A DNA stretch of 54,179 nt, filler included, from Hydrolagus affinis (Eukaryota), in the NCBI GenBank assembly GCA_012026655.1. It is 3 parts of 3 records of this genome, joined end to end, with 100 filler letters (N's around TTAATTAATTAA, not from the genome) between each part and the next. Parts side by side here need not be neighbours in the genome. Positions count along the whole stretch, not along the records: positions 12,390 to 42,155 come from JAAILG010007786.1; 2 more parts are not named here. One strand, 5' to 3'. A program made the translations under genes and the position numbers. Under the pieces are notes generated by a model, which did not search any database, had not been told where the DNA came from, and worked only from the letters and a program-made list of their open reading frames with translations. Numbering within the stretch: the stretch's first letter is position 1; every line of letters begins with the position of its first letter. Shown here one piece after another: positions 13,943 through 41,397 of the stretch.

Positions 13943-14270
13943 ATATTATCATTAATTTGACTGTGCTGTCTAGGGTTTTGGAAGAAACTGGACTTCAAGG
14001 ACTTAATGCAGAAACAGGTGGGAGCAAAGTTCAGTGACCAGGTCTTTGGATGGATACAAACAGTAAGGTTAACAGGGGATGATAATTTTGATGTTTAAAG
14101 GGGCTTGATGCTTAAAACAACATTTCCGGTTTGAGAGAGCACCACTGACTCAATGGTGATGCTGAATGCTACTTTTTATGTTCAGATATTTGTTTAACCT
14201 TCCTCTGGGATTAATAGGAAGAATTATTATTATCTCAATTTTACTGTAGAAGTGGATTTCAAATCGTATC

Positions 14271-14313
14271 AACCACACCAACCACATTTCACAAACCCAA
14301 ATCAACAGGAAGT
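14271..14313 (+). promoter_or_regulatory. Candidate gene C promoter: two RUNX-like ACCACA sites and an ETS site CAGGAAGT
   Basis: Motifs 75-115 nt upstream of the ATG; short motifs, function untested. Confidence 0.35.
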
Positions 14314-14387
14314 CAGTGTCACAGCTACCTAGTCTATATCAAATACTCCACGTTCACGTGTTACAGTTTATCAGAGTCGAGTCAGAC

Positions 14388-14439
14388 ATGGGGAGTTTTG
14401 TCTTTCTGTACCTGTCCGTCTTAAATTTTATTTCAACAG
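14388..14439 (+). CDS. Gene C exon 1, signal peptide (MGSFVFLYLSVLNFIST)
   Basis: ATG 14388, 52 nt, phase-1 donor CAG/GTATAT; paralogous to D and E leaders. Confidence 0.8.
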
Positions 14440-14598
14440 GTATATGTCTACTCTATCACTCAGTTCTTCTATGAAATATGTGCAAGCTTGTTTCCGCGTG
14501 CCATGTATCATATGTACCTACTTTTTGCTGTTTTACTGCTTTGGTTTTCCCATGGCATACTTTCTAAGAAATCATTCTTTGACTTTATTTTCTGACAG

Positions 14599-14919
14599 TT
14601 GCTGGCGATTCTTCAGTGAAAGTGACTCAACTCCCCAAACGTGTAACTGTCATCGGAGGGACCAATATCAATTTCATCTGTATCTTTTCATCCTCTCAAA
14701 ACAGTTCAGGAGTGGATGTGCAGTGGAAGAAGGAGGGTGAGGATGGCTATTTAGATACAATTGTGGATAGCAGGAAAATATTTGGTGTGAAAGAGAAAGG
14801 AAGCAGCTACTTCCAGCTCCTGAATGTGAGTTTCCAGGACTCTGGGGTCTATCGCTGCACAGTGACCCGCCAGGGATCAATAATTGGAACAGGACCTGGA
14901 TCACAATTAATTGTGCAGG
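14599..14919 (+). CDS. Gene C exon 2, NKp30/SIRP-like VJ-type V domain
   Basis: Acceptor TGACAG, donor CAGG/GTGAGT; VTQ..FIC..VQW..DSGVYRC..IGTGPGSQLIV, resembling the NKp30 G-strand GVGTGNGTRLVV. Confidence 0.88.
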
Positions 14920-16049
14920 GTGAGTGTGGATCAAGAGCAAAACTATGCAAAAATTACACAAAATGTAATAAATGCAGTGAATGCTATTTGAATATTGATA
15001 TTTTTTGTGCATTAATAACCTTTACATCTTAATTTTTAGAGTATGTTATGTGAGAATCATGTGTTTAATTTCAAACTGTACGCAACTAAAACACAAAATA
15101 CTGTAACTCACTACAACTTCACGAATAATTTTATAACAACAACAATTTGCATTTATATCGTGGCCTCCACACCAGGCGGCATGTCAGAGTGCTTCAGAAT
15201 GGCGGAGCCCGAGGCCGAGGGGGACGGTAACCATAAGCATGGTAGAAGAGAAAGATCTTCAGGCACGACCTGAAGATGGAAAAGGAGGAGGTGAAGAGAA
15301 GGGGTTAAGGATGGTAGTTCGAATGTTTCGGCCAGTAATGACTAAAAGCAGAGCCACAAATGTTTGAGTGGAGGATTAAGGGACAAGCAGGAGGCTGGAC
15401 ACATTAGATTGCAGTGAGGAGAGACCAGGTCGGAGAGTTAGAGGAGGTGCAGAGGAGTGGAGGGATTTAAACACAAGATTGAGAATGGAGTGGAAGACAA
15501 CTTAAAAAAAAAATTAATTGTTGGGCAGGCCGCCGATTCTCTATTTGAATTTGGCCATGAGATCATTAACGTTTTAGCCAAATAACGGTCATAACTAAAC
15601 CAGGTTTAAATTTGCATTTAAGAACAGCATTGCAACAGATGATTCAACGTAGACTATATGAATTCCAAGTCTGGAGACGGAGCTTGAACCCAAACCCTTC
15701 TAACTCAGAATCGAGAAAGTTACCAATTGAGCTAGAATAACATCGTGTGCACAGCCATCAGGAATATTCTATATCCTGTGTTTGATAGTTCGCAGTGATC
15801 AATTCCACCTGCTAATCATTACATTCAGTATAATATTTACGACAACAATATGAAGGAGTATTGATGATAAAACCACAAATTAATCAAAGCAGGAGGAACG
15901 CTCTGCTGCGATGAGAGGAATATGTGTAACTAAACTAACCTCCATTTGCACTCAGGAATCAGGATTTTGCAAATAAATGAATCAAAATAAAGCTTGTCCC
16001 GCCGATTCGTCAAAACTAATACGATTTTCCTCTATTATCTGTTCTACAG

Positions 16050-16367
16050 TTCCCCCAACTCCAATCAGGATTTTCTCTAATTCAACTGAGCAAGTAGCTC
16101 TTGTGTGTGAAACTACCGCGTTTTACCCAAAGTATTTCACCCTCACATGGCATAAAGATGGGATTCAAATTACACGAACATCAGGAATAAAGGTGGAGGA
16201 GACAATAACCAGTGAAAAGCAGAAATCGGGGGAACTCTATAAGGTCTCTAGCTCTATTGAAGACACACAGTCTGTCCAGAAAACTTCTGTTTATACCTGT
16301 CTGGTGTCTCACGCCACCCTCAAGACTTCAGCTATTGCCACCTACACTATCCCAAAACCTGATGCAG
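16050..16367 (+). CDS. Gene C exon 3, Ig C1-set domain (SIRP/tapasin-like)
   Basis: Acceptor CTACAG, donor CAG/GTAAGA; LVCETTAFYP..LTW.KDG..YTCLVSH.TL. Confidence 0.9.
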
Positions 16368-16739
16368 GTAAGATTCTAAACAAATTTTAATTAACCAACT
16401 GTTGTTAATTCAAATCTCATAGTAATGCTTCTTTGCATTGACTCGCAAATAACGTTAACAACAAAGTTACATTTGTGTAGCGCCTTTCATTGAATCATCT
16501 GAAGTGATTTGAGATGACGATAACAAGATAATAATAATATTATCAATCATTGCATTCAATATATGAGACGCTATAGAAAATGCAGAGATTGTTATTATTG
16601 AGCTGCTGAAAGCCAGAGTTCATAGGGACTTGAAGTTTGACACGAACTGGATCGAAGGTGAATGTTGCCTGTGGAGTAAGATGGGAGAGTTGGGTTTCAC
16701 CGTTATACACGTGGACGTACAATACATGTCTATGGTTCA

Positions 16740-16945
16740 TGTCGCCAAGTGGGAGAACAGAGATAGTGAAGGGCAGAGGCTGAGGTTAGAGCCCTGAGGA
16801 ACAGTCAATGTTCGGCAGCTCCTGCCTGTGACTTGAGGGATGGAATGTGACTTGCTCTCCGGGGAGACCTGCAGGGATTGGAAGCGATGCCAGAGTTTAT
16901 AGGAGACAAATGTGTTGGGAATGGTGATGAGGGGGTTGTACATGA
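16740..16945 (-). mobile_element. Old L2-type RT remnant in gene C intron 3
   Basis: VPQGS motif in ORF 16737..16943. Confidence 0.5.
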
Positions 16946-17565
16946 TGGTGATTAACTACATTATATCATTTGAATGTGAAACATTTTATGTGTATCATCA
17001 AACATTTTGTTAATTCTAAGTGGTAACATCCTAAATAATTTTGAAAACCTCGGTTTCAGCTCAGGACATGCCTTTCCATCCCATAAGGTTCCATCTTTTT
17101 ATTATTAACAAGTGAGCAGGTTTTATCACTGTGATCTGATGTCAATAGGTACACCTGTCTTATTCTGCAATATATAGATTGTATTTTGTAAGGATTCCTT
17201 TGAAAATCAATGTTCCATTTGGGGTATTCTGTGTGTTACTCTTGCCTGTGTACTAAAATCAAGAGGTATAATAAAAATAATTGAGAGCTGTTGTCAATAG
17301 ATACACCTGTGCTACGCTATATAAATATCAAACTGTTTTCAGTGATGGTCTCCTTGTAATTTTAATTCTTATTTCAATAAATACACAGATTAAGATTAGG
17401 CGTGATAGTTAAACCGGTTATTGTGCTTAGAACTTACTTGAAATCAATACAAACTATCAATGCAAACTATATACAGTATATGCATAACATTTCTGTTCTA
17501 CTGAAATTATAAACCATTCCCCTATACAATGTACAGTTTCACCTCAATGTATACTATTTCTCCAG

Positions 17566-17679
17566 GGAGTGGAAATAAAACCCCTCATTTACAGTTGGGT
17601 GGATATGCAGCGGGTGGATGTGTATTTCTGATCCTTTTAATCATAATTGGGAACCGATACCGATTGAAGAAGAAAAACG
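17566..17679 (+). CDS. Gene C exon 4, transmembrane
   Basis: Acceptor CTCCAG, donor ACG/GTAAGA; LGGYAAGGCVFLILLIIIG then NRYRLKKK; no charged TM residue. Confidence 0.85.
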
Positions 17680-18560
17680 GTAAGAAAATTCTGATATCAT
17701 TGCAATTAATTGTCAATGTTATATTTGGATACAAAAGCTTAGAAAGCAGCAATGGTTAGCCAAGAGAAAAAACAACTTCCTTGTGACTTCAAATTTGAAG
17801 ATAGAGTTCTGTGATGCTGCAGTTATACAATACCAATTACTTGTAGTTGTCGCAACAGTTTTACATGGTGAACTTTGGTATCCCAGAATTTCTCATTTTC
17901 CAACACCCAATATCTGAAATCTGACTTAATATTTTGCAACCACCTTAAACTACAATGAATTATTATATAACTGTGGCGATGAATGGCGTCAAACAATTGC
18001 AGGGACAGGCACCAGGTGTATGTTTATCAGTAATAGAATTCAGCCACACATTATATTGAAATTGTAACATTGAAAATATGTTTTTATTATTGAGAGTGCC
18101 AGGAGAAATACCAAGGCCCAGACTGCAGGAAACAACCAAGTTTCATAAGAAAAACTAAAAGATTTAAGGAATAGTGTTTGGTCGTCGCTGTTGCATATTG
18201 CTTTAACAAGATAAGTTTCAATTGAATGAGACAAGTATAAAAAGATTATGGGAAGAGTGACTGGATAGATTTGGAAGAGAGTGGAAAGTGGTTGATCTGA
18301 TAGAGATAAATTTGAATTGAAGTACTGGGGTTATCCACATTGCATTTTGTGGATTAAATAACATGACAGTCACCAAGTTTCAGATTTAAAATATTCAAGG
18401 GAAAGAGTTACACAGTGTTACGGATTTCAGAAAGTATGAGTGAGATGAAAATTCTATATGTCATTACATTTCATCCTGAAATGTAGAAAAGTTACATTAT
18501 TTTAGTGTTAATATTGAAATGGAATAAATATTTAGTGAAGTAAATTGTATTCATATTTAG

Positions 18561-18604
18561 GATCAAAGGGAAACCTGACTCAATCGGGCAATCATGAAGA
18601 TCAG
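18561..18604 (+). CDS. Gene C exon 5, short cytoplasmic linker
   Basis: Acceptor ATTTAG, donor CAG/GTAAGT; 44 nt converts phase 1 to phase 0, as both downstream motif exons require. Confidence 0.7.
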
Positions 18605-19179
18605 GTAAGTTTATCACCAAATCATTGGGTGACTAATGGACCAATTTAGTAATTATCATTTTGGAGCCTATAATTCCAACCCTTTTAAAATGCTTCATGG
18701 GTGGTAACATTGTCTTTGCAGCAACTCTATTTGCTCGAACCAACTTGCACACAATATGGTCCCATGATGAAGTCTATTGCCAATTTATCATGATTATCAT
18801 TTGCCAGGTCACCAGACAAATCTCATCCCACCTCCAACAATACATTTATTTGCTCTATGAACTGAAAGTTTGCAACCTTAATATGACTCCTCCAGAATTC
18901 CACACCTATTTATTTCCCTTTACATTAAGTTGTTACTTCAATAAACACAATTGGCTGGCAGTAATTTACCTTACTGGTAATCAGTTCTGCAACATATTGA
19001 AATGAAATGAAAGGCAAAACCTCAGTTGGAATTACGAATTTCACTGCATCTAGATAGAACTCGATCAACTTACAGCCATTGTTTCCCCTAAAATCCCTAC
19101 TTAGTCAATACCATGGTCAAAGAGTACAGACCTAGGAAGTCAACTGAACAATCATTTAACTCTATACTTTGTTTTACAG

Positions 19180-19305
19180 ATGGGGGAGGGAGCAGCGGGT
19201 GACAATGTGGCTTATGTAACATTGGATTTGAGAAATTCCAATAAAACTCCAAGACCTAAACACCAGGATGAGGGCACAGTATATGCCCAGGTAAACAACA
19301 TGTAG
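19180..19305 (+). CDS. Gene C exon 6, ITIM (VAYVTL) plus ITSM (TVYAQV); internal donor at 19290
   Basis: Acceptor TTACAG phase 0; reads MGEGAAGDNVAYVTLDL...GTVYAQVNNM-stop; CAG/GTAAAC after 19290. Confidence 0.8.
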   Translation: MGEGAAGDNVAYVTLDLRNSNKTPRPKHQDEGTVYAQVNNM

Positions 19306-19974
19306 GTTGTTAAATAGGCTTGACTTTGAGCGTTATGATTTTGTCTGTTCCTCCAATCTTCTACCTCATTTGGAACCTGCCTTTGGTTGTTGAACATGTT
19401 CAGCCTTCCAGCATTTAACCAGCATCATTTATTTATCTAAAGTTAATGGGCATATGTAAAATGGGTGAATTTGAAGGAATATTGTGGAAACATCAGGTAA
19501 ATGGGACTCAATAAATTATTCTTTCAAGTTGACAGTACGTGTATGATGTGCAGACTGGCTTTCTGGGCTATAAAGTTCCTAAGGTTGTATCTTTACATAT
19601 GAATCAACAATTCATCAAATAAGTTAACAACGATCACATGTATTCTGACCCAGACATTTTGAGATGTCAAGTTCCCAGAGAGCAATCAGTTAATCAGCAT
19701 TAACTGATCATCACAAACCATTAAAGCAGCTGTCAGCTCATCGTTGAGATCTACAGACATTAAATGCACAGCGAGATATCACAGTTTGAAATATATTTAC
19801 CAATTGGCCATGGGGTGATGGGTTTGGTATAATGTAACATAAAACTTGTTGCTCACATGAGGAGAAGAGATTAAAAAATTATAGCAAAAAATAGGTAAGG
19901 ATGGAGCTCATGTGAAGTATAAACACTGGCTGCCCAGTTTCCTTACCATTCTATTTACATCTACAACAATAACA

Positions 19975-20570
19975 ACAACTTCGATTTATATAGCACCCTC
20001 CACGCCGGCCGGCGTCTCAGAGCGCTTCACAGTGACGGATTCCAGGAACGAGCCAGGGGCAGGGGTTGAAAGGTGACCAAAGGCGCAGTCGAAGAGAAAG
20101 GTCTTTAGCTGTGACCTGAAACTGGGAAGAGAAGGGGGTGAGGCGAAGGGAGTGAGGAAGAGAGTTCCAGAGCCTTGGGGCATAGTGGCTGAAGGCATGG
20201 CTGCCGAGGTGGAGCGGAGGATTCGGGGACATGGAGGAGGCCAGATCCAGTGGAGCGAAGGCAGCGGGTGCTGGTTTGGGGAGAAAGGAGATCAGAGAGG
20301 TAGTGGGGTGCAGAGGAGTGGAGGGATTTGAAAACAAGGGTGAGGATCTTGAAGTTGATCCTCTCTGGGACAGGGAGTCAGTGAAGTCTGGCAAGGACTG
20401 GGGTAATGGGGGTGAGTATGCGGGTGAGTATGCGGGTGGCAGAGTTTTGGATTGGCTGGATTTTGTGGATTGTGGTGGCGGGGAAACCGGCAATGAGGGC
20501 ATTGCAGTAGTCCAGCTGAGAGGTGACAAAGGCATGGACCAAGGTTTCAGCGGCTTTTGGAGTGAGGTAT
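19975..20570 (-). mobile_element. L2 LINE 3' fragment between gene C exons 6 and 7
   Basis: C-terminal RT-region remnants (AAETLVHAFV.S.LDYCNAL, APRLWNSLP) and (TTG)n tail; explains ORFs 20017..20646 and most of 20231..20785. Confidence 0.85.
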
Positions 20571-20620
20571 CTATATATGGAACCAGCAAAAAGACAATCC
20601 CAAACGTTGTTGTTTTGCAG

Positions 20621-20785
20621 ACCAAGCGAGGAGCCACCGCTGACAAGCTGACCTATGCTGAACTGGATTTAACTCGCTCCAAACAAACAAAAAAAGCTAA
20701 ACCCTGCGACAAGAATTCAGAGTATGCGGAGGTAAATATCGGAAAATACAAGGCTGTCACTGTCATGGAATCAGGAACCGTATGA
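20621..20785 (+). CDS. Gene C exon 7, second ITIM (LTYAEL) plus SEYAEV motif, terminal exon
   Basis: Acceptor TTTTGCAG phase 0; TKRGATADKLTYAELDL...SEYAEVNIGKYKAVTVMESGTV-stop; paralogous to exon 6. Confidence 0.8.
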   Translation, partial: TKRGATADKLTYAELDLTRSKQTKKAKPCDKNSEYAEVNIGKYKAVTVMESGTV

Positions 20786-21123
20786 TGTCACAATAATAGA
20801 TAATTACCACTGCATATCAGTCACAGATCGCTTCTGATGAAAGCTAGTGACAGTGTGTATATCAATGCTGATCTGCTATTGTATCACCGCTTTGACAGTG
20901 CAGAAAGATTCGATTCTGTTTGTATTACCCATCATTTATCAAGTCGATCCAATTTCATCTTCTAATTTGTTTAATACGAATCTGATAATGTCGTTGTGCT
21001 ATCAACTCTAATCGTTTATAAAAGCAATGAAGCTGTTATATCACTGGAACAAAATATACCAATCCAAATCTAGAACCAGTTTATAATAGTTTATAACATT
21101 GTAAAGCGGTTTTGTCAACTTTC

Positions 21124-21129
21124 AATAAA
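21124..21129 (+). terminator. Candidate polyadenylation signal of gene C
   Basis: AATAAA about 340 nt after the exon 7 stop codon. Confidence 0.35.
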
Positions 21130-21318
21130 CAATATTTTATGGAATGCGACGTGTCGAGTTTGATTTGGTCAATCTCTCTCTTTGATAGCATCAGATAAAA
21201 TAAATCAGAAACCATAATGTAGAATTCTTACGCTTTGTTTCAGATACAGCTTAGCCAAGTACTTACTGCTGGACTTCAGATATAGATTATGATGATTCTT
21301 TAATGTTCAGTAAGGTTG

Positions 21319-21344
21319 CTCTCTCTCTCTCTCTCTCTCTCTCT
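21319..21344. repeat. (CT)13 microsatellite
   Basis: Direct reading. Confidence 0.95.
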
Positions 21345-22099
21345 GGGAAATCTAAACATTTTAAGGATTGGTCATCAATTAAATGATTGGACGAAACGCA
21401 GCCCTTCAGTTGATTCCGGTTATCCTCATTCCATTCTCCATGTAGCAAATTTCAAGAATAAATATATAGTTTACTGCCCACAAAATTTGTATGTAGAGCA
21501 TATGATCAATTCTAATAACAATTCTCAATCTGTTACATTTAAAAGTTAGTTATCCTGAGTTCGGGCTGGCTGCCTCATGGAACTAATAAGTTTAACACCA
21601 AGTCCTCTTCATTACATACAGCTGGAAGTAAATATTCACCAATTCAGTGTTTGCATTGAGGGTAATGTTTTGTTTCACATATATTTTGTTACCTCATCTG
21701 ATGACAATAACATACAGAGACTCAAGTTAGAAGTAAACCGATATAAATTACCTTAACAGCTACCTAAGAAAATTCAATGTAATTCATCTACCGCAATGGA
21801 AAAGTTATTGTGTGAGCGTTATGCAAGTACGTGCAAAAGCTAGCTAAAATAAAGCTACATGTATTTTTACTTATGTCACTGCTGCACTGGGTTAAACAAA
21901 GAACACGATTGTCCCCGTTGATAGGCAGTTCATGCAACACATCAACTGATGCTGTGTGGGGTGGATGGGTGTAGCAATTTCACACATACGCGCATATATC
22001 CACAACTATATATATATACGTATACGTTACAATTTCACACCGCAAAGCCTTTTCTTGGCCAACAGTAAAGCCCATGTCCTTAACTGCATGTTTTCATCT

Positions 22100-23399: not shown

Positions 23400-23900
23400 C
23401 AACAAAATTACATTTGTATAGCACCTTTCTTGTCAGGGCGATATCCCATGGCTCTGGACAGTCACTGCGTCAGACCTGAGCTCAGAACAGGTGGTGGGAG
23501 GGAAAGGGGGGGATTAGGAGTTGCCGATGAGTCCTTCGAAGAGAAGAGTCTTGAGGTGAGACTTGAAGGAGGCCAGGGAGGGGACGAGGCAGAGCGACTG
23601 CAGGATGGAGTTCCAGAGGTTGGGGGCAGAGTGGCTAAAGGCACGCCTGCCAATGGTGGGGAGGGTGGGGAGGGGACGTGGAGCTGGCCAGAGCCTGATG
23701 AGCAGATGAAACAGGCAGGTTGATAAGGAGATACAAGGTCAAGGATGTAGGGTGGTGGGGGGGGCGAGGTTGTGGAGGGCTTTAAATGTGAGGACTAGGA
23801 TATTGAATTGGATCCTCTGCATGATGCATAGCCAATAGAATGGGGGAGATGGGGGTCACAGAGTTTGGAACAGTAGAGGACATGCGCCTCATAGTTCTGG
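23400..23900 (-). mobile_element. L2 LINE 3' fragment
   Basis: Same tail and WNSLP-region similarity as the other copies. Confidence 0.65.
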
Positions 23901-24539: not shown

Positions 24540-25770
24540 TCTCTTCTGGATGAGCGTGAATTTCCTTCAGCTCAATGTTGACAAGACGGAAGCCATATTC
24601 TTCAGTTCTTGTCAACATATTCAATCCCACAGCTCTCACCTCCTCCACCTACCCGACCTGCCCCTAAACCCTCCAAACCTATATGCAACTTAGGCGTCAG
24701 GTTTATCTCCCAATTATTCTTCCTCCATCACATCTGGTCCCTCACCAGCACCGCTTTCTTCCATCCTGGACACATCACCCGTCTCCACCAATATTTCACC
24801 TCAAAAGCCCCCTAAACACTGGTCCATGCCTTTTGTCAAATCTCGGTTCCATTATTCAAATGTCCTCTTCGCTGGTCTCCCCTCCGCCACCATCCTCAAA
24901 ATCCAGGTTAATCAAAATTCTGCTGCCTGCATTCTCAACCATACCAAACTTTGCTCCCCGATTACCCCAGTCCTTGCCAGACTTCACTGGTTCCTTGTCT
25001 TGGAGTGAATTGCTTTCAAAATCCTCAATCTTGTTTTCAAATCCCTCCACTCCTCTGCACCCCCCTACCTCTCTTACTTCCTCTTTCCTCACAACAACAC
25101 CTATTGCCTTCACTCTATCAGATCTGGCCTTTTCCTTGCCTCCCAAATCTTCCGTACCACCGTCAGCAGCTTCAGCCACTATGGCACGAGGCTCTGCTAC
25201 TCCCTTCCTCACTCCCTTTGCCTAGTCAGCTCTTTTCCTGTTTTCAGGTCATGGCTAAGACCTTTGTTTTCGACTGCGCTTTTGGTCACCTTTTTTCCCC
25301 CACCTGGTGCCTCAGCCCTGGGATCCATTATTGTGAAGCACTCTGAGACGCTGTCCGGCATAGAGGGCATTATATAAATCCAAGTTGTTGTTGTTGGCTC
25401 GACTACGCCAACGCCGTGCTTGTCGGTCTTCCCAATTCCTCCCTCCATAGCTTGCAGAAAATCCAGAACTCTGCGGCCAGTGTCCTCTACCACTCCAAGC
25501 TTCAGGACCCCGTCTCCCCCATCCTTGCCCAACTTTATTGGCTTCCTATCACCCAGACGATCCAAATCAAGATCCTAGTTCTCACATTCAAAGCCCTCCA
25601 TGGCCCTCCATGGCCTTGCCCTACCCTCCTTGCTATCTGCTAACCCCATACCAACCTGCCCGCAGCCTCTGCGCAGCAACCTTCAACCTGCTCCACGTTC
25701 CCCAATCCATCCATCCCACCATCGGCGGGCAATCATTTGGCCACTTTGCCCCCAACCACTGGAACTCTAA
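24540..25770 (+). mobile_element. Two tandem L2 LINE fragments (about 24540-25395 and 25400-25770)
   Basis: FLQLNVDKTE-like start, IQNSAA..L and HWL..RI motifs, tail TATAAATCCAAGTTGTTGTTG. Confidence 0.8.
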
Positions 25771-27393: not shown

Positions 27394-27448
27394 ATGGTGG
27401 CCAGTGATATGTCCCCCTATCTTTCTCTAATGGGGATTATTTTCACAG
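27394..27448 (+). CDS. Gene D exon 1, signal peptide (MVASDMSPYLSLMGIIFT)
   Basis: 55 nt, phase-1 donor CAG/GTAAGT; close paralogue of gene E leader. Confidence 0.8.
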
Positions 27449-27659
27449 GTAAGTGTTTCACAACAGTGCATTTAAATACAGATCGATATCGGTGAAGTGT
27501 TTCAAAATGTGTTCAGTGAGTGCGTCCATCACTCTTTCGCTTTCTTCCACCTTCTCTCACTCCTTCCCTATAGCTATTTTATCATCTTTCATCAACTCTA
27601 TCATCGCTAATTATAGATTCCACAATCACTTATTATAGATCTGTGTTATTTTCTCACAG

Positions 27660-27965
27660 TTGCAGGTGATGCATCGATGAAAGTGATTCAATATCCTGAA
27701 GACCGGACAGTAATGCAAGGTGAAAACGTTGCCTTTGGCTGCAAGGTTGCCGATATTCCACACGATTCAGATATAACATTTCACTGGTGGAAGCGAGGAG
27801 AGAGTGAGTACTTACATCAAAGACCTGACAACAGGAAAATGTTTGGCGTCAAAACATTCCAGCTTCTAAATGTGAATTTCAATGATTCCGGAGTCTATCA
27901 CTGTGCAGTGATCCATCAGGGGAAAAGAGCAGAAAATGGAACCGGATCAAGTTTGACTGTACACG
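27660..27965 (+). CDS. Gene D exon 2, NKp30/SIRP-like V domain
   Basis: Acceptor TCACAG, donor ACG/GTAAGT; VIQYP..FGC..HWW..DSGVYHC..NGTGSSLTV. Confidence 0.88.
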
Positions 27966-28695: not shown

Positions 28696-29588
28696 TATTA
28701 CTATTATTAATCAAAGTCACTTGTACCTATGGTCCAGACATTTACAATTCACTAATTTATAAGAAAGGCAAATGTTTAAAATCAGTTAGACAATTTCAGG
28801 TAACCTGAACAATCTACACAAAAACAATGTCCCACATTCAGCCACTAAATTATTTTGAATTACCTATTCTAGTTATGGAAAATTGTTTGGAAACCTATAA
28901 ACTAAATTAAAAAGCAGAGTGGAACAAAATCAATGTTGGTGTGAGATGGGATCTTTTGCTTCTATTTCTAATTATGGTGAAGTCTCTAGATTTCTGCAGG
29001 ACACGATCCTGCGATTAGGGCATTTTATAATTACAGATTGCTGCTGGAGAATGGTGGCAGAACTTTTAATTGATTTTCACCTGCCACTTTCCTCATATCC
29101 CATTTGAATCGGCATCTAAAGCCACTTATGGGAATGGATACCACAATTTTACCGAATTATATATGAATACAAAATGTTTCATTTTACATCTAATAGGTTT
29201 AGACAAGACGTTAGGGTTGTGTACCCTTCAAATTTTGCTCCTCTACTAGAAGTACGTGCTCTGGGCATTTTTAGCCTTTGTTGACAGCTCAATCAAATTA
29301 CTTCCCATCCTTCCCACATATATCAAATATAAACCACGTTTACTCATCTTATCGTCATAGTTAGATCCTTTCATCCATTAATCTACTAAATACTGGCTTT
29401 ACCTCCTGCAAGGCATCTTTTGACATTTGCTACCCTGAACATTGTTGAAAATAAAAAACCCAAACAGGATAAGTCTCTTTCTGTTACAATCCAGACTACT
29501 TGTTCGGACAACAACAATAATGGGAATAAAGTTTTATATTCCAACTAATCACAAGTAACGCGATTTTACTCCATTGTGTGTCCTACAG

Positions 29589-29906
29589 TCCCCCCGACCC
29601 CTCTGCGGATATTCCCCAGAGATTCTGAAAGAGAATCATCAACATCTCAGATTCTTGTGTGTAAAACGGCTGCGTTTTACCCCGACGGTGCAATGCTCAC
29701 TTGGAATAAAGGTAGTGAAGTTATAACTGCGATAAATTTTACTGAAGAGAAGAATACAGATGGACTTTATGAAGTTTCTAGCTATATGGAAGACACACAA
29801 CCTGTACAGTTCGGTGTAGTTTATACCTGTCTGGTATCTCACGTCACCCTCCAATCTCCAGTGGTTGCCGTCTACACCGTTCCTAAAGTGTACACAGCAT
29901 TGGAAG
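29589..29906 (+). CDS. Gene D exon 3, C1-set domain
   Basis: Acceptor CTACAG, donor AAG/GTAGGA; LVCKTAAFYP..LTW..YTCLVSH.TL. Confidence 0.88.
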
Positions 29907-30754
29907 GTAGGATGCTGACTTGTTTTGAAGTCTTTTGTTGTTTAACACCTTGCTACCAGAAAATATATTTACATTTATTTACGCCACCATTTGTAGGCAT
30001 CCAATCTTCCCGCTGTAGACTCAATATATACAAAACTATCAACTATAAATGTAGAGTCTTTGAATCGAAGAATATCTCAGATCTGGGTATTTCTTGTTTA
30101 TCCATTAAATTCTAAATATCTTCCCTTCAAATAAGTTCATTACTTTTGTGGCATTTAGTAACATGCCAAACTGCAATAGTCCTGCAATAGTCCTCTCCCC
30201 ACCTATATTTAGGTTTGAAATCAGAAATCAAACTTTTGGACTAATACATGCGTACAAATGAAACAAATAATATTTGTTAATCAATCCATTGAATTTTCTG
30301 ATGAATTTTTTGAACAAACCTTTCGTTACTTATTCCTTTGGAACAAAAATCACCATAATTAAAACAAAACTCTTTTGTGAGATGTTTTAAAGAAGTTCAG
30401 TTTAATAGTAGATGTCCAATGGAATCAGTTTTGATTACGATAGTGGCCACAGCTTGGGTCTGAACAGTCATTCTCTCTGGTACATTTGAAGTTGAGCACA
30501 CAGTCTCAGGGGAACTATTACCACATAATATATAAATACATCTCTAAAACATCACTAATAAACTGCCTGTGCATTGGTATTCACTGCTATTCTCTACTGT
30601 TTTCAATCAATTGAATGCACAGTTTATAATATTCCTCCACCTCATTGTAGCTTCCAATAGAAAATAGTTAAGAACGTATTTATTTTCCCAATAAAGCCTA
30701 ATTATTGAGTAGTTTCCATGTAAATCCTTTTGCATTCCAATATTTGTTTTCTAG

Positions 30755-32229: not shown

Positions 32230-32950
32230 GAACCTGTGCGCAACCTAGGCATCAGGTTTGACTCACAACTGTCCTTCCTCCCCCACATCTGGTCGCTCAC
32301 CAGCACCGCCTTCTACCACCTCCGACAGATCGCCCGTCTTCGGCAATACTCACGCCGAAAGCTGCTGAAACCTTGGTCCATGCCTTTGTCACCTCTCAGC
32401 TGGATTACTGCAACGCGCTCCTCGCCGGTCTCCCCGTCACTACAATCCACAAAATCCAGCTAATTCAAAACTCTGCCACCCGCATACTCACCCACACCAA
32501 GCTTTGCTCCCCATTACCCCACGCCTTGCCAGACTTCACTGGCTCCCTGTCCCTGAGAGGATCAATTTCAAGATTTGTTTTCAAGTCCCTCCACTTCTCT
32601 GCACCCCCCGAACCTCTCTGATCTCCTGCCTCCCCAAACCAGCACCCGCTACCTTCCCTCCACCGGGTCTGGCCTCCTCCATGTCCCCCGAATCCTCCAC
32701 TCCACCCTCAGCGGCCATGCCTTCAGCCACTATGCCCCAAGGCTCTGGAACTCCCTTCCTCACTACCTTCACCTCGCCCCCTCTCTTCCCAGTTTCAGGT
32801 CTCAGTTAAAGACCTTTCACTTCGACCGTGCCTTTGGTCACCTTTCTACCCATGCCCCTGGCTCAGTCCTGGGATCCGCTATTGTGAAGCGCTCTGAGAC
32901 GCCATCCAGCTTGGAGGGCGCCATATAAATCAAAGTTGTTGTTGTTGTTG
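32230..32950 (+). mobile_element. L2 LINE 3' fragment
   Basis: VRNLGIRFDSQLSF..LVHAFVTSQLDYCNALLAGLP..APRLWNSLP over shifted frames; (TTG)n tail. Confidence 0.88.
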
Positions 32951-32952
32951 TT

Positions 32953-37770: not shown

Positions 37771-37849
37771 TATTATTCTCTATAGTTAATTTGTTACCTT
37801 TCTTCAACACTATAATCACCAACGCATGGTTTTAATTGTTTTCTCACAG

Positions 37850-38155
37850 TTGCTGGTGATGCATCGATGATAGTGATTCAATATCCTTTAGACCGGACAG
37901 CACTCCAAGGTGATAACGTTACCTTCAGCTGCAAGTTTGCCGGTAACCAACCCAGTTCAGATCTAACATTTCACTGGTGGAAGCAAGGAGGGAGTGAATA
38001 CTTACATAAAAGACCCGACAACAGAAAAATATTTGGTTTCAAATCATTCCAACTCCTAAATGTGACTTCCCAAGAATCAGGAGTCTATCACTGTGCGGTG
38101 ATCTGTCAGGGGAAAGCATTGGGAAATGGAACTGGATCACGTTTAATTGTACATG
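37850..38155 (+). CDS. Gene E exon 2, NKp30/SIRP-like V domain
   Basis: Acceptor TCACAG, donor ATG/GTGAGT; 66 of 96 residues identical to gene D V by manual alignment. Confidence 0.88.
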
Positions 38156-41025: not shown

Positions 41026-41139
41026 AACATGCTGCTCTACCTAACTACGGACTGATCGCTGGATGTACAGCGGGAGGCCTGGTATTTCTGTTGCTTTTGA
41101 TCATCATTGGCAAACAATGCCAATTAAAAACAAAGAAAG
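41026..41139 (+). CDS. Gene E exon 4, transmembrane (paralogous to gene C TM)
   Basis: Acceptor TTGTAG, donor AAG/GTGAGA; GLIAGCTAGGLVFLLLLIIIG; cytoplasmic exons not found before the gap at 42156. Confidence 0.82.
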
Positions 41140-41397
41140 GTGAGATGTATTCCTATTTCATTGAGATTAAATGGAAATGCTTAATTTAGTACAAAAATTC
41201 AGTCAATCGGTGAGAGAATTCGAGGTGACAAGGAGAGAAAGACATCCTGGTAAAGTGATGACAATCATCAATTTATTGCGATTGAATTACAAATAACCTG
41301 ACAGAATCTCTTCCCGTGTATATTTAATCAGAAATTTCCATGCAACGAATATCTTAAATCTGTTGTGATACAACTACAGAAGGCTAAGGCATACAAC

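Follow-up and report, generated by a model that had tools for sequence, protein, structure and literature searches.

The receptor SIRP-alpha (SHPS-1, PTPNS1) recruits the phosphatases SHP-1 and SHP-2, and its tail has four tyrosines arranged in two pairs, the last of them in SEYASV. NKp30 signals through CD3-zeta/FcR-gamma by way of an arginine in its transmembrane (TM) segment. In CEACAM1 (L and S forms), PECAM-1 (tail exons) and NKp30 (a, b and c forms) the content of immunoreceptor tyrosine-based inhibitory motifs (ITIMs) is set by alternative splicing, with isoforms established at both the RNA and the protein level. Further described motifs of the SIRP-alpha tail are ITYADL, LTYADL and TEYASI (PMC5413580), and UrIg/UrIg2 and PRARP represent non-rearranging VJ-C1 genes of lower vertebrates (PMC10751288, PMC12227049). 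Here we describe gene C, a receptor gene of the cartilaginous fish Hydrolagus affinis (assembly GCA_012026655.1), which lies in a window of 54,179 nucleotides (nt, filler included; the whole stretch of DNA analysed), on the piece at 12390-42155 (record JAAILG010007786.1). It is probable that gene C encodes an inhibitory-type receptor with a modular tail, whose normal product is the form of 374 amino acids (aa) made by joining exons 5, 6 and 7, with polyadenylation after 21124 and a predicted recruitment of SHP-1/SHP-2-type phosphatases.

Gene C consists of seven exons, all of them open and all joined at canonical GT-AG boundaries (Table 1). Together they amount to 1125 nt and encode the 374-aa type I membrane protein, with a leader, a V-set domain, a C1-set domain and one hydrophobic segment. 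Exon 2 matched the Pfam V-set and Ig_3 profiles with e-values of 2.8e-8 and 3e-9, respectively, and exon 3 matched C1-set with an e-value of 5.4e-10. The top sequence matches of exon 3 in the PDB were immunoglobulin (Ig) mu constant domains, and a UrIg2 C domain was also among the matches. The TM segment, LGGYAAGGCVFLILLIIIG, contains no charged residue. In the cytoplasmic tail exon 6 supplies the ITIM VAYVTL, followed 23 residues on by TVYAQ, and exon 7 supplies the ITIMs LTYAEL and SEYAEV; in the spliced product the tyrosines of VAYVTL and TVYAQT, and likewise those of LTYAEL and SEYAEV, are 23 residues apart within each pair. The product displays the general features of an ITIM-bearing inhibitory receptor of the immunoglobulin superfamily (IgSF), namely an Ig ectodomain, an uncharged TM segment and tail motifs of the form [SIVL]xYxx[ILV] (VAYVTL, LTYAEL and SEYAEV).

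A first-pass annotation of this DNA had taken exons 6 and 7 for paralogues, both entered in phase 0, and this was borne out by tblastn, DNA alignment and direct reading. A tblastn search inside the piece aligned the two exons without gaps at 15/36 identical residues (e-value 1.6e-6, the next best match having 0.4), and an ungapped DNA alignment, which includes GGTAAA at the donor position, shares 72/126 bases; judged from these alignments, the likeness exceeds chance. The annotation's three products, of 374 aa (spliced), 324 aa (read-through of exon 6, ending TVYAQVNNM) and 337 aa (exon 6 skipped), are indeed all in frame, and the motifs VAYVTL, TVYAQ(T/V), LTYAEL and SEYAEV as well as AATAAA at 19510 and 21124 were found where it had placed them. 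Its assignment of exon 7 to gene C also stood, given that the corresponding exons are spliced together in the model of the orthologue, XP_042196354.1.

This orthologue, from Callorhinchus milii (LOC103185896, P0002, named 'uncharacterized protein'), was the top match among the 267 hits obtained when the V exon was searched against 1.84 billion representative proteins, and its V domain is 69% identical to that of exon 2. The window from 14105 to 21497 is colinear with the C. milii locus (L001, 9717-16250) at 72-81% identity, introns included, and the two are therefore orthologues. The C. milii protein shares with gene C the leader (17/17 residues of the exon 1 leader align), V, TM, spacer and two tail exons, and it has a donor relic in its last exon. 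Exon 4 aligns with its TM exon as well as with that of the third gene of the cluster described below. The C. milii tail reads ..GSKGNLTQLGKLEDQ/AGEAAAGDNVAYVTLDLRSSNKTPRNKHQEDRTVYAQ/TKRGAAANKLTYAALDLPRSKNTGKAKHSDKNSEYSEVKIRNYEDGTFMESGTA (here and below, slashes within sequences mark exon junctions or donor positions), with the motifs ..VAYVTLDL..TVYAQ/TKRG..LTYAALDL..SEYSEV.., and its spacer GSKGNLTQLGKLEDQ sits between the same junctions as exon 5. As exons 5, 6 and 7 are joined at the same two junctions in this model, exon 7 is part of gene C, and the form with outside support is that of 374 aa; the join of exon 6 to exon 7 is already present in the predicted protein of the orthologue.

The pattern of DNA conservation was examined across the same locus. 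Exon 6 is 88% identical to its C. milii counterpart, and the 330 nt behind it are 73% identical, like other intron sequence. The coding part of exon 7 is 83% identical, with GAG/GTAAAG at the same donor-like place in C. milii (L001 ~15490), and its 3' untranslated region (UTR) is 81% identical, the distal AATAAA being kept in the motif CTTTCAATAAACAA. The introns measured beside exons 6 and 7 have 63% and 73% identity. The two loci differ in that the annotated C. milii protein leaves out the C1 exon, although an intact C1 exon, 60% identical to exon 3, is present in the C. milii locus (L001 11143-11460). Furthermore, read-through of exon 6 would add 13 residues in C. milii as against 4 in gene C, and the C. 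milii intron 6 has no repeat. In Heterodontus, isoform X4 (P0114, compared with P0180) lacks C1 and isoforms X1-X3 have it. Skipping of this phase 1-1 exon may be the real alternative splicing of the family, which would give an NKp30-like, V-only ectodomain.

Beyond the orthologue, single-domain matches to the V exon at 40-69% identity were drawn from the cartilaginous fishes Callorhinchus, Heptranchias, Heterodontus, Stegostoma, Mustelus, Pristis, Narcine, Scyliorhinus and Chiloscyllium. Their names come automatically from the NCBI pipeline: many are 'tyrosine-protein phosphatase non-receptor type substrate 1-like' (SIRP-alpha-like), and others are 'signal-regulatory protein beta-1-like', 'natural cytotoxicity triggering receptor 3-like' (one C. 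milii member), 'tapasin-related protein-like' or 'uncharacterized'. A search with the orthologue's tail retrieved only itself and one Scyliorhinus protein, and a search with the exon 7 peptide gave no match; there is therefore no annotated gene C product in that protein collection. A literature search found no paper on this LOC103185896-group family. Gene C shares with the group a colinear locus, the same junctions and 37-residue units that end in Y-x-[QE] at a phase-0 GT. Multi-V-domain proteins of reptiles (turtles, lizard; P0012, P0013, P0048 and P0068), named 'polymeric immunoglobulin receptor-like', 'titin-like' and 'CD22-like', also match the V domain. Two of them have ITIM-like tail motifs (P0048 and P0068: VTYADLNF; LTYASLRF..VIYAEVRT), and this reptile group may represent distant kin of the family beyond the cartilaginous fishes.

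The tails of about 20 relatives in chimaeras, sharks and rays, with members from Callorhinchus, Heptranchias, Heterodontus, Stegostoma, Pristis and other genera, comprise one to four units, whose first tyrosine motifs are 37 residues apart. Each unit pairs an ITIM (PhixYxxL) with another tyrosine, which follows after 22-23 residues. This 37-residue spacing matches the 111-nt exon 6, and the two-unit arrangement of gene C is also seen in the C. milii orthologue and many paralogues. In the three C. milii genes whose loci were read, the internal unit exons (one each) end right after Y-x-[QE] with a phase-0 GT, the donors being CAG/GTACAC in the orthologue, CAG/GTAAAG in XP_007902825 and GAG/GTACCA in XP_007902824. 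Internal units have Thr three residues after the second tyrosine (Y+3; TVYAQ/TK(Q/R)G) in 12/15 of the multi-unit proteins listed, counting gene C and the P0180 isoform group once each. Where the second motif of a last unit is complete, this position is occupied by V, I or L (SEYAEV, TEYAEI, TEYAQL). At the old donor position of the last exon both gene C and C. milii retain GTAAA(T/G), which in gene C takes the form of a donor-like GAG/GTAAAT at 20729-20737, divided at 20731/20732, matching the place of the unit 1 donor; to judge by these retained bases, the Val of SEYAEV is a fossil splice site.

On the simplest reading of these patterns, the tails lengthen as unit exons are duplicated in tandem, and translation of the last copy continues across what was once its donor. 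The tail is modular, a 37-codon exon of phase 0-0 being repeated in tandem, and this exon ends at a GT donor two residues after the second tyrosine. An internal unit is spliced to the next unit, which brings Thr to Y+3 (TVYAQ/TK(R/Q)G), and in the last unit the old donor position is read as Val, Ile or Leu, completing a canonical motif (SEYAEV). The 374-aa form is predicted to carry three canonical ITIMs and the non-canonical TVYAQT; its phosphorylated tail tyrosines would engage SHP-1/SHP-2-type phosphatases, by which activation would be damped. Such read-through can be seen directly in Heterodontus XP_067906071, whose last unit is a near-copy of an internal unit and ends ..RPIYAV/YSSSKYIGHRRSALAHNRQGT before its stop codon. 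The signatures TVYAQT in unit 1 and xEYAx[VIL] in unit 2 recur across chimaeras, sharks and rays, and because they recur in all three the two-unit tail would be older than the split between them. As a separate observation, the Heterodontus francisci proteins P0180, P0163, P0179 and P0114 have a four-unit tail made by a recent duplication of a two-unit block, and their last unit likewise ends by read-through of the copied donor (..RPIYAV/YSSSKYIGHRRSALAHNRQGT).

The first-pass annotation had also noted that the Val codon of exon 6 doubles as a donor, and had proposed that signalling is tuned by splicing at this point. The dual reading of CAG/GTAAAC is real; it is uninformative as to a switch, and it is a family-wide feature, seen in every internal tail exon that was mapped in C. 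milii. Any phase-0 GT reads as Val, and hence a Val at Y+3 on read-through is automatic. The proposed tuning was not supported, as the read-through peptide and the proximal AATAAA are unconserved and the tails of annotated isoforms are invariant. The peptide is VNNM before the stop in gene C and VHSIEKSCIEQVW before the stop in C. milii. C. milii has AATAGA where the proximal AATAAA aligns, and the sole AATAAA of that C. milii intron sits elsewhere; we estimate that chance alone would place about one AATAAA in an intron with the length and base composition of intron 6. Within each of three related genes, the NCBI isoforms share the same tail and are distinguished by their 5' ends or by skipping of the C1 exon. 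The RNA sample consisted of four runs. One of these (X1) comprises DNA-like contigs from a relative of 2-4% divergence that are continuous through introns, and nearly all matches of the three single-cell RNA runs are to interspersed repeats. In one of the latter (X4) a handful of reads lie in exon 3, exon 7 and the exon 7 3'UTR, reaching the bin 21016-21212, and in these same sparse runs no reads fell on exon 6 or the stretch behind it.

A regulated switch would alternate between the 324-aa form, with VAYVTL and an immunoreceptor tyrosine-based switch motif (ITSM), TVYAQV, produced by intron retention or by polyadenylation after 19510, and the 374-aa form, in which the ITSM is lost and two ITIMs are gained, altering the SH2 partners. 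Both forms are open and in frame, and an AATAAA lies 220 nt downstream of exon 6. The donor CAG/GTAAAC, like the other unit donors, is without G at +5, and on this account a degree of intron retention is plausible. Nonsense-mediated decay is not triggered when the last intron is retained, and because intron 6 is the last intron a transcript that keeps it would escape this fate. Moreover, the tail of Heterodontus XP_067906071 ends by read-through of a copied unit donor, and the Ensembl/UniProt models of the C. milii paralogue P0023 read through the unit donor (TVYTQVYPRN..). Against the switch stand the uninformative coincidence at Y+3, the unconserved peptide and proximal AATAAA, the invariant tails of the annotated isoforms and the empty exon 6 in the sparse runs. 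In addition, the stretch behind exon 6 is conserved no better than intron (73% vs 72-81% locus-wide), and the recurrence of the Thr at Y+3 with the TK(R/Q)G start in chimaeras, sharks and rays speaks for selection of the spliced form. The 324-aa short form is possible but unobserved, and a regulated switch is unproven and at present less likely than constitutive splicing; on balance we regard it as unlikely. A related and rather improbable proposal is that the donor two residues after the tyrosine is a conserved device and not a by-product of exon duplication, the unspliced transcript giving TVYAQV and the end of the protein, and the spliced one TVYAQT, with the motif masked and more ITIMs added. 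If true, cells could set the strength of inhibition or the choice of partner through splicing efficiency at weak donors (those without +5 G), and a splice switch, once borne out by RNA data, would be moderately interesting.

Two other accounts bear on whether the 374-aa form is made at all. Exon 6 could be the true last coding exon and the 324-aa protein the only product, with exon 7 a relic through insertion of a 608-bp repeat or through disuse. Intron 6 has in fact been lengthened by this repeat, which is missing in C. milii, and a stop lies four codons past the donor. Yet exon 7 is intact, has a good acceptor (tgttgttttgcag) and keeps its 83% identity to C. milii along with a conserved stop region, 3'UTR and AATAAA, and the sole reads near the 3' end of the gene fall on exon 7 and its UTR, making this account barely credible. 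Alternatively, gene C could be an unexpressed or decaying copy in a receptor cluster of fast turnover, in which case its isoforms would be moot. Receptor clusters of this kind often contain pseudogenes, the neighbouring gene 2 is without TM and tail exons, and there is almost no RNA support for gene C. However, its seven exons are open with canonical splice sites, exons 6 and 7 stand at 88% and 83% identity vs 63% and 73% for the adjoining introns, and the orthologue is annotated as protein-coding; we consider such decay very unlikely. The preferred reading, an inhibitory-type receptor constitutively spliced to the 374-aa form, has its own counts against it. The few RNA reads come from a single-cell run labelled as another organism, and no exon junction was listed among them. 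The exon 6 donor and all unit donors seen are without G at +5, and the C. milii protein, which omits the C1 exon, stems from gene prediction and not from cDNA cloning. The predicted SHP binding is drawn from motifs only, and TVYAQT, one of the four tyrosines of the spliced form, is neither a canonical ITIM nor a canonical ITSM.

The piece that carries gene C is vertebrate DNA of about 34-49% G+C. Three genes stand there in tandem on the + strand, gene C being the first, and all of them have both a V-set and a C1-set exon. Gene 2 shows no TM or tail exon before gene 3; it could be a truncated copy, or else a secreted or decoy form, similar to C. milii XP_042196356 ('tapasin-related protein-like'), which is likewise V-C1 only. 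The C. milii counterpart of gene 3, LOC103185949, has a two-unit tail (VAYVTLNL..TVYAQ/TKQG..LTYAALDL..TEYAEL) as in gene C. Within the piece, tail exons of genes 2 and 3 were not found, nor was a third tail unit downstream of exon 7 of gene C. The 608-bp repeat of intron 6 is missing from the orthologous C. milii site and has four further copies in the piece, at 32349-32951 (-), 24796-25396 (-), 15135-15486 and 23536-23818, which are 66-87% identical. It has extreme depth in all runs, the DNA-like run and the single-cell RNA runs alike.

Table 1. Positions in the window of gene C, its neighbours and associated elements (slashes mark exon junctions)
Feature	Positions	Strand	Description
Gene C exon 1	14388..14439	+	Start codon and leader MGSFVFLYLSVLNFIST; phase 1 end, CAG/GTATAT
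Gene C exon 2	14599..14919	+	V domain, J-like end GTGPGSQLIV; non-rearranging VJ type
Gene C exon 3	16050..16367	+	C1-set immunoglobulin domain, phase 1 to 1
Gene C exon 4	17566..17679	+	Stalk, uncharged TM LGGYAAGGCVFLILLIIIG, basic stop-transfer NRYRLKKKN
Gene C exon 5	18561..18604	+	Short cytoplasmic spacer GSKGNLTQSGNHEDQ; phase 0 end, CAG/GTAAGT
Gene C exon 6	19180..19290	+	Tail unit 1, 37 codons (111 nt), phase 0 to 0; ttttacag acceptor, donor CAG/GTAAAC
Read-through codons	19291..19305	+	GTA AAC AAC ATG TAG (VNNM, stop), TAG at 19303-19305; end of hypothetical 324-aa form
Proximal AATAAA	19510..19515	+	Inside intron 6; candidate poly(A) signal of short form
Interspersed repeat, 608 bp	19962..20569	+	Inserted in intron 6; no role in gene function
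Gene C exon 7	20621..20785	+	Tail unit 2 and C-terminus; ttttgcag acceptor; TGA 20783-20785
Exon 7 3'UTR	20786..21129	+	Runs to distal AATAAA 21124-21129
Second high-depth repeat	~16288-16680
Gene 2 leader	27394-27444	+
Gene 2 V exon	27659-27964	+
Gene 2 C1 exon	29588-29911	+
Gene 3 V	37849-38154	+
Gene 3 C1	39749-40048	+
Gene 3 TM	41031-41141	+	Tail would fall past the end of the piece

Gene C is real as sequence and ordinary as biology, a probable inhibitory IgSF receptor of a known but unstudied cartilaginous-fish family. It adds one more cartilaginous fish to a V-C1 receptor family that we found only in automatic annotation, and the exon design offers a simple account of how ITIM tails of one to four units arise and end. 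The combination of an NKp30-like V domain with a SIRP-alpha-like tail bears on the early paired and inhibitory receptors of jawed vertebrates and on the non-rearranging VJ-C1 genes.

The description of the V domain as NKp30-like, which goes back to the first-pass annotation, was examined with an AlphaFold model of this domain (pLDDT 90.8). In a Foldseek search of Swiss-Prot, NKp30 entries ranked 1-3, 5 and 15, with an e-value of 1.6e-9 and 20-23% identity over the whole domain, and CD79B and Ig heavy-chain variable (VH) domains were close behind. Against the PDB, NKp30 (3noi) ranked 8 and SIRP-alpha 22, among IgNAR, nanobody and T-cell receptor V domains. When the PDB was searched by sequence, using the V exon or a profile of 22 V sequences, multi-Ig proteins and antibodies dominated the matches, and NKp30 was not discriminated from SIRP. 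The description thus holds in so far as NKp30 is the best reviewed structural match of the model, with a narrow margin over CD79B and Ig VH, and 'NKp30-like V' appears a fair label within that margin. The V domain of NKp30 has a J-like end similar to that of exon 2, of the form G-x-G-x-x-L-x-V. The identity of gene C as NKp30 itself is ruled out by its C1 domain, its TM segment without Arg and its ITIM tail: NKp30 has a single V domain and no C1, a TM Arg and a short tail free of ITIMs, whereas gene C combines a C1 domain with an uncharged TM segment and ITIMs.

The likeness of the tail to SIRP-alpha, put forward at the outset, was upheld, in that it contains two [PhixYAxL ... 23 aa ... xxYAx] units and that NCBI names many family members after SIRP-alpha. 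Gene C shares with SIRP-alpha a VJ-type V followed by a C1-set domain, an uncharged TM segment and four tail tyrosines in two ITIM-type pairs, and from its motifs it probably works like SIRP-alpha, with SHP-1/2 recruited after Src-family phosphorylation. It differs in being V-C1, with one C1 exon between the V and TM exons, where SIRP-alpha is V-C1-C1, and on this domain number it fails as a member of the SIRP family. Its V domain is nearer NKp30 than SIRP-alpha by Foldseek, and the second tyrosine of its spliced unit 1 stands in the non-canonical TVYAQT. Like CEACAM1, PECAM-1 and NKp30, gene C has small tail exons whose choice alters the tyrosine motifs, although in gene C, unlike in those receptors, the isoforms are unobserved. 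With UrIg/UrIg2 and PRARP it shares a germline-joined, VJ-type V followed by a C1-set domain. An identity with UrIg or UrIg2 was set aside, these being different, multi-C-domain genes: UrIg and UrIg2 have many C domains, with no ITIM mentioned in the paper describing them, whereas gene C has one C1 domain and an ITIM tail.

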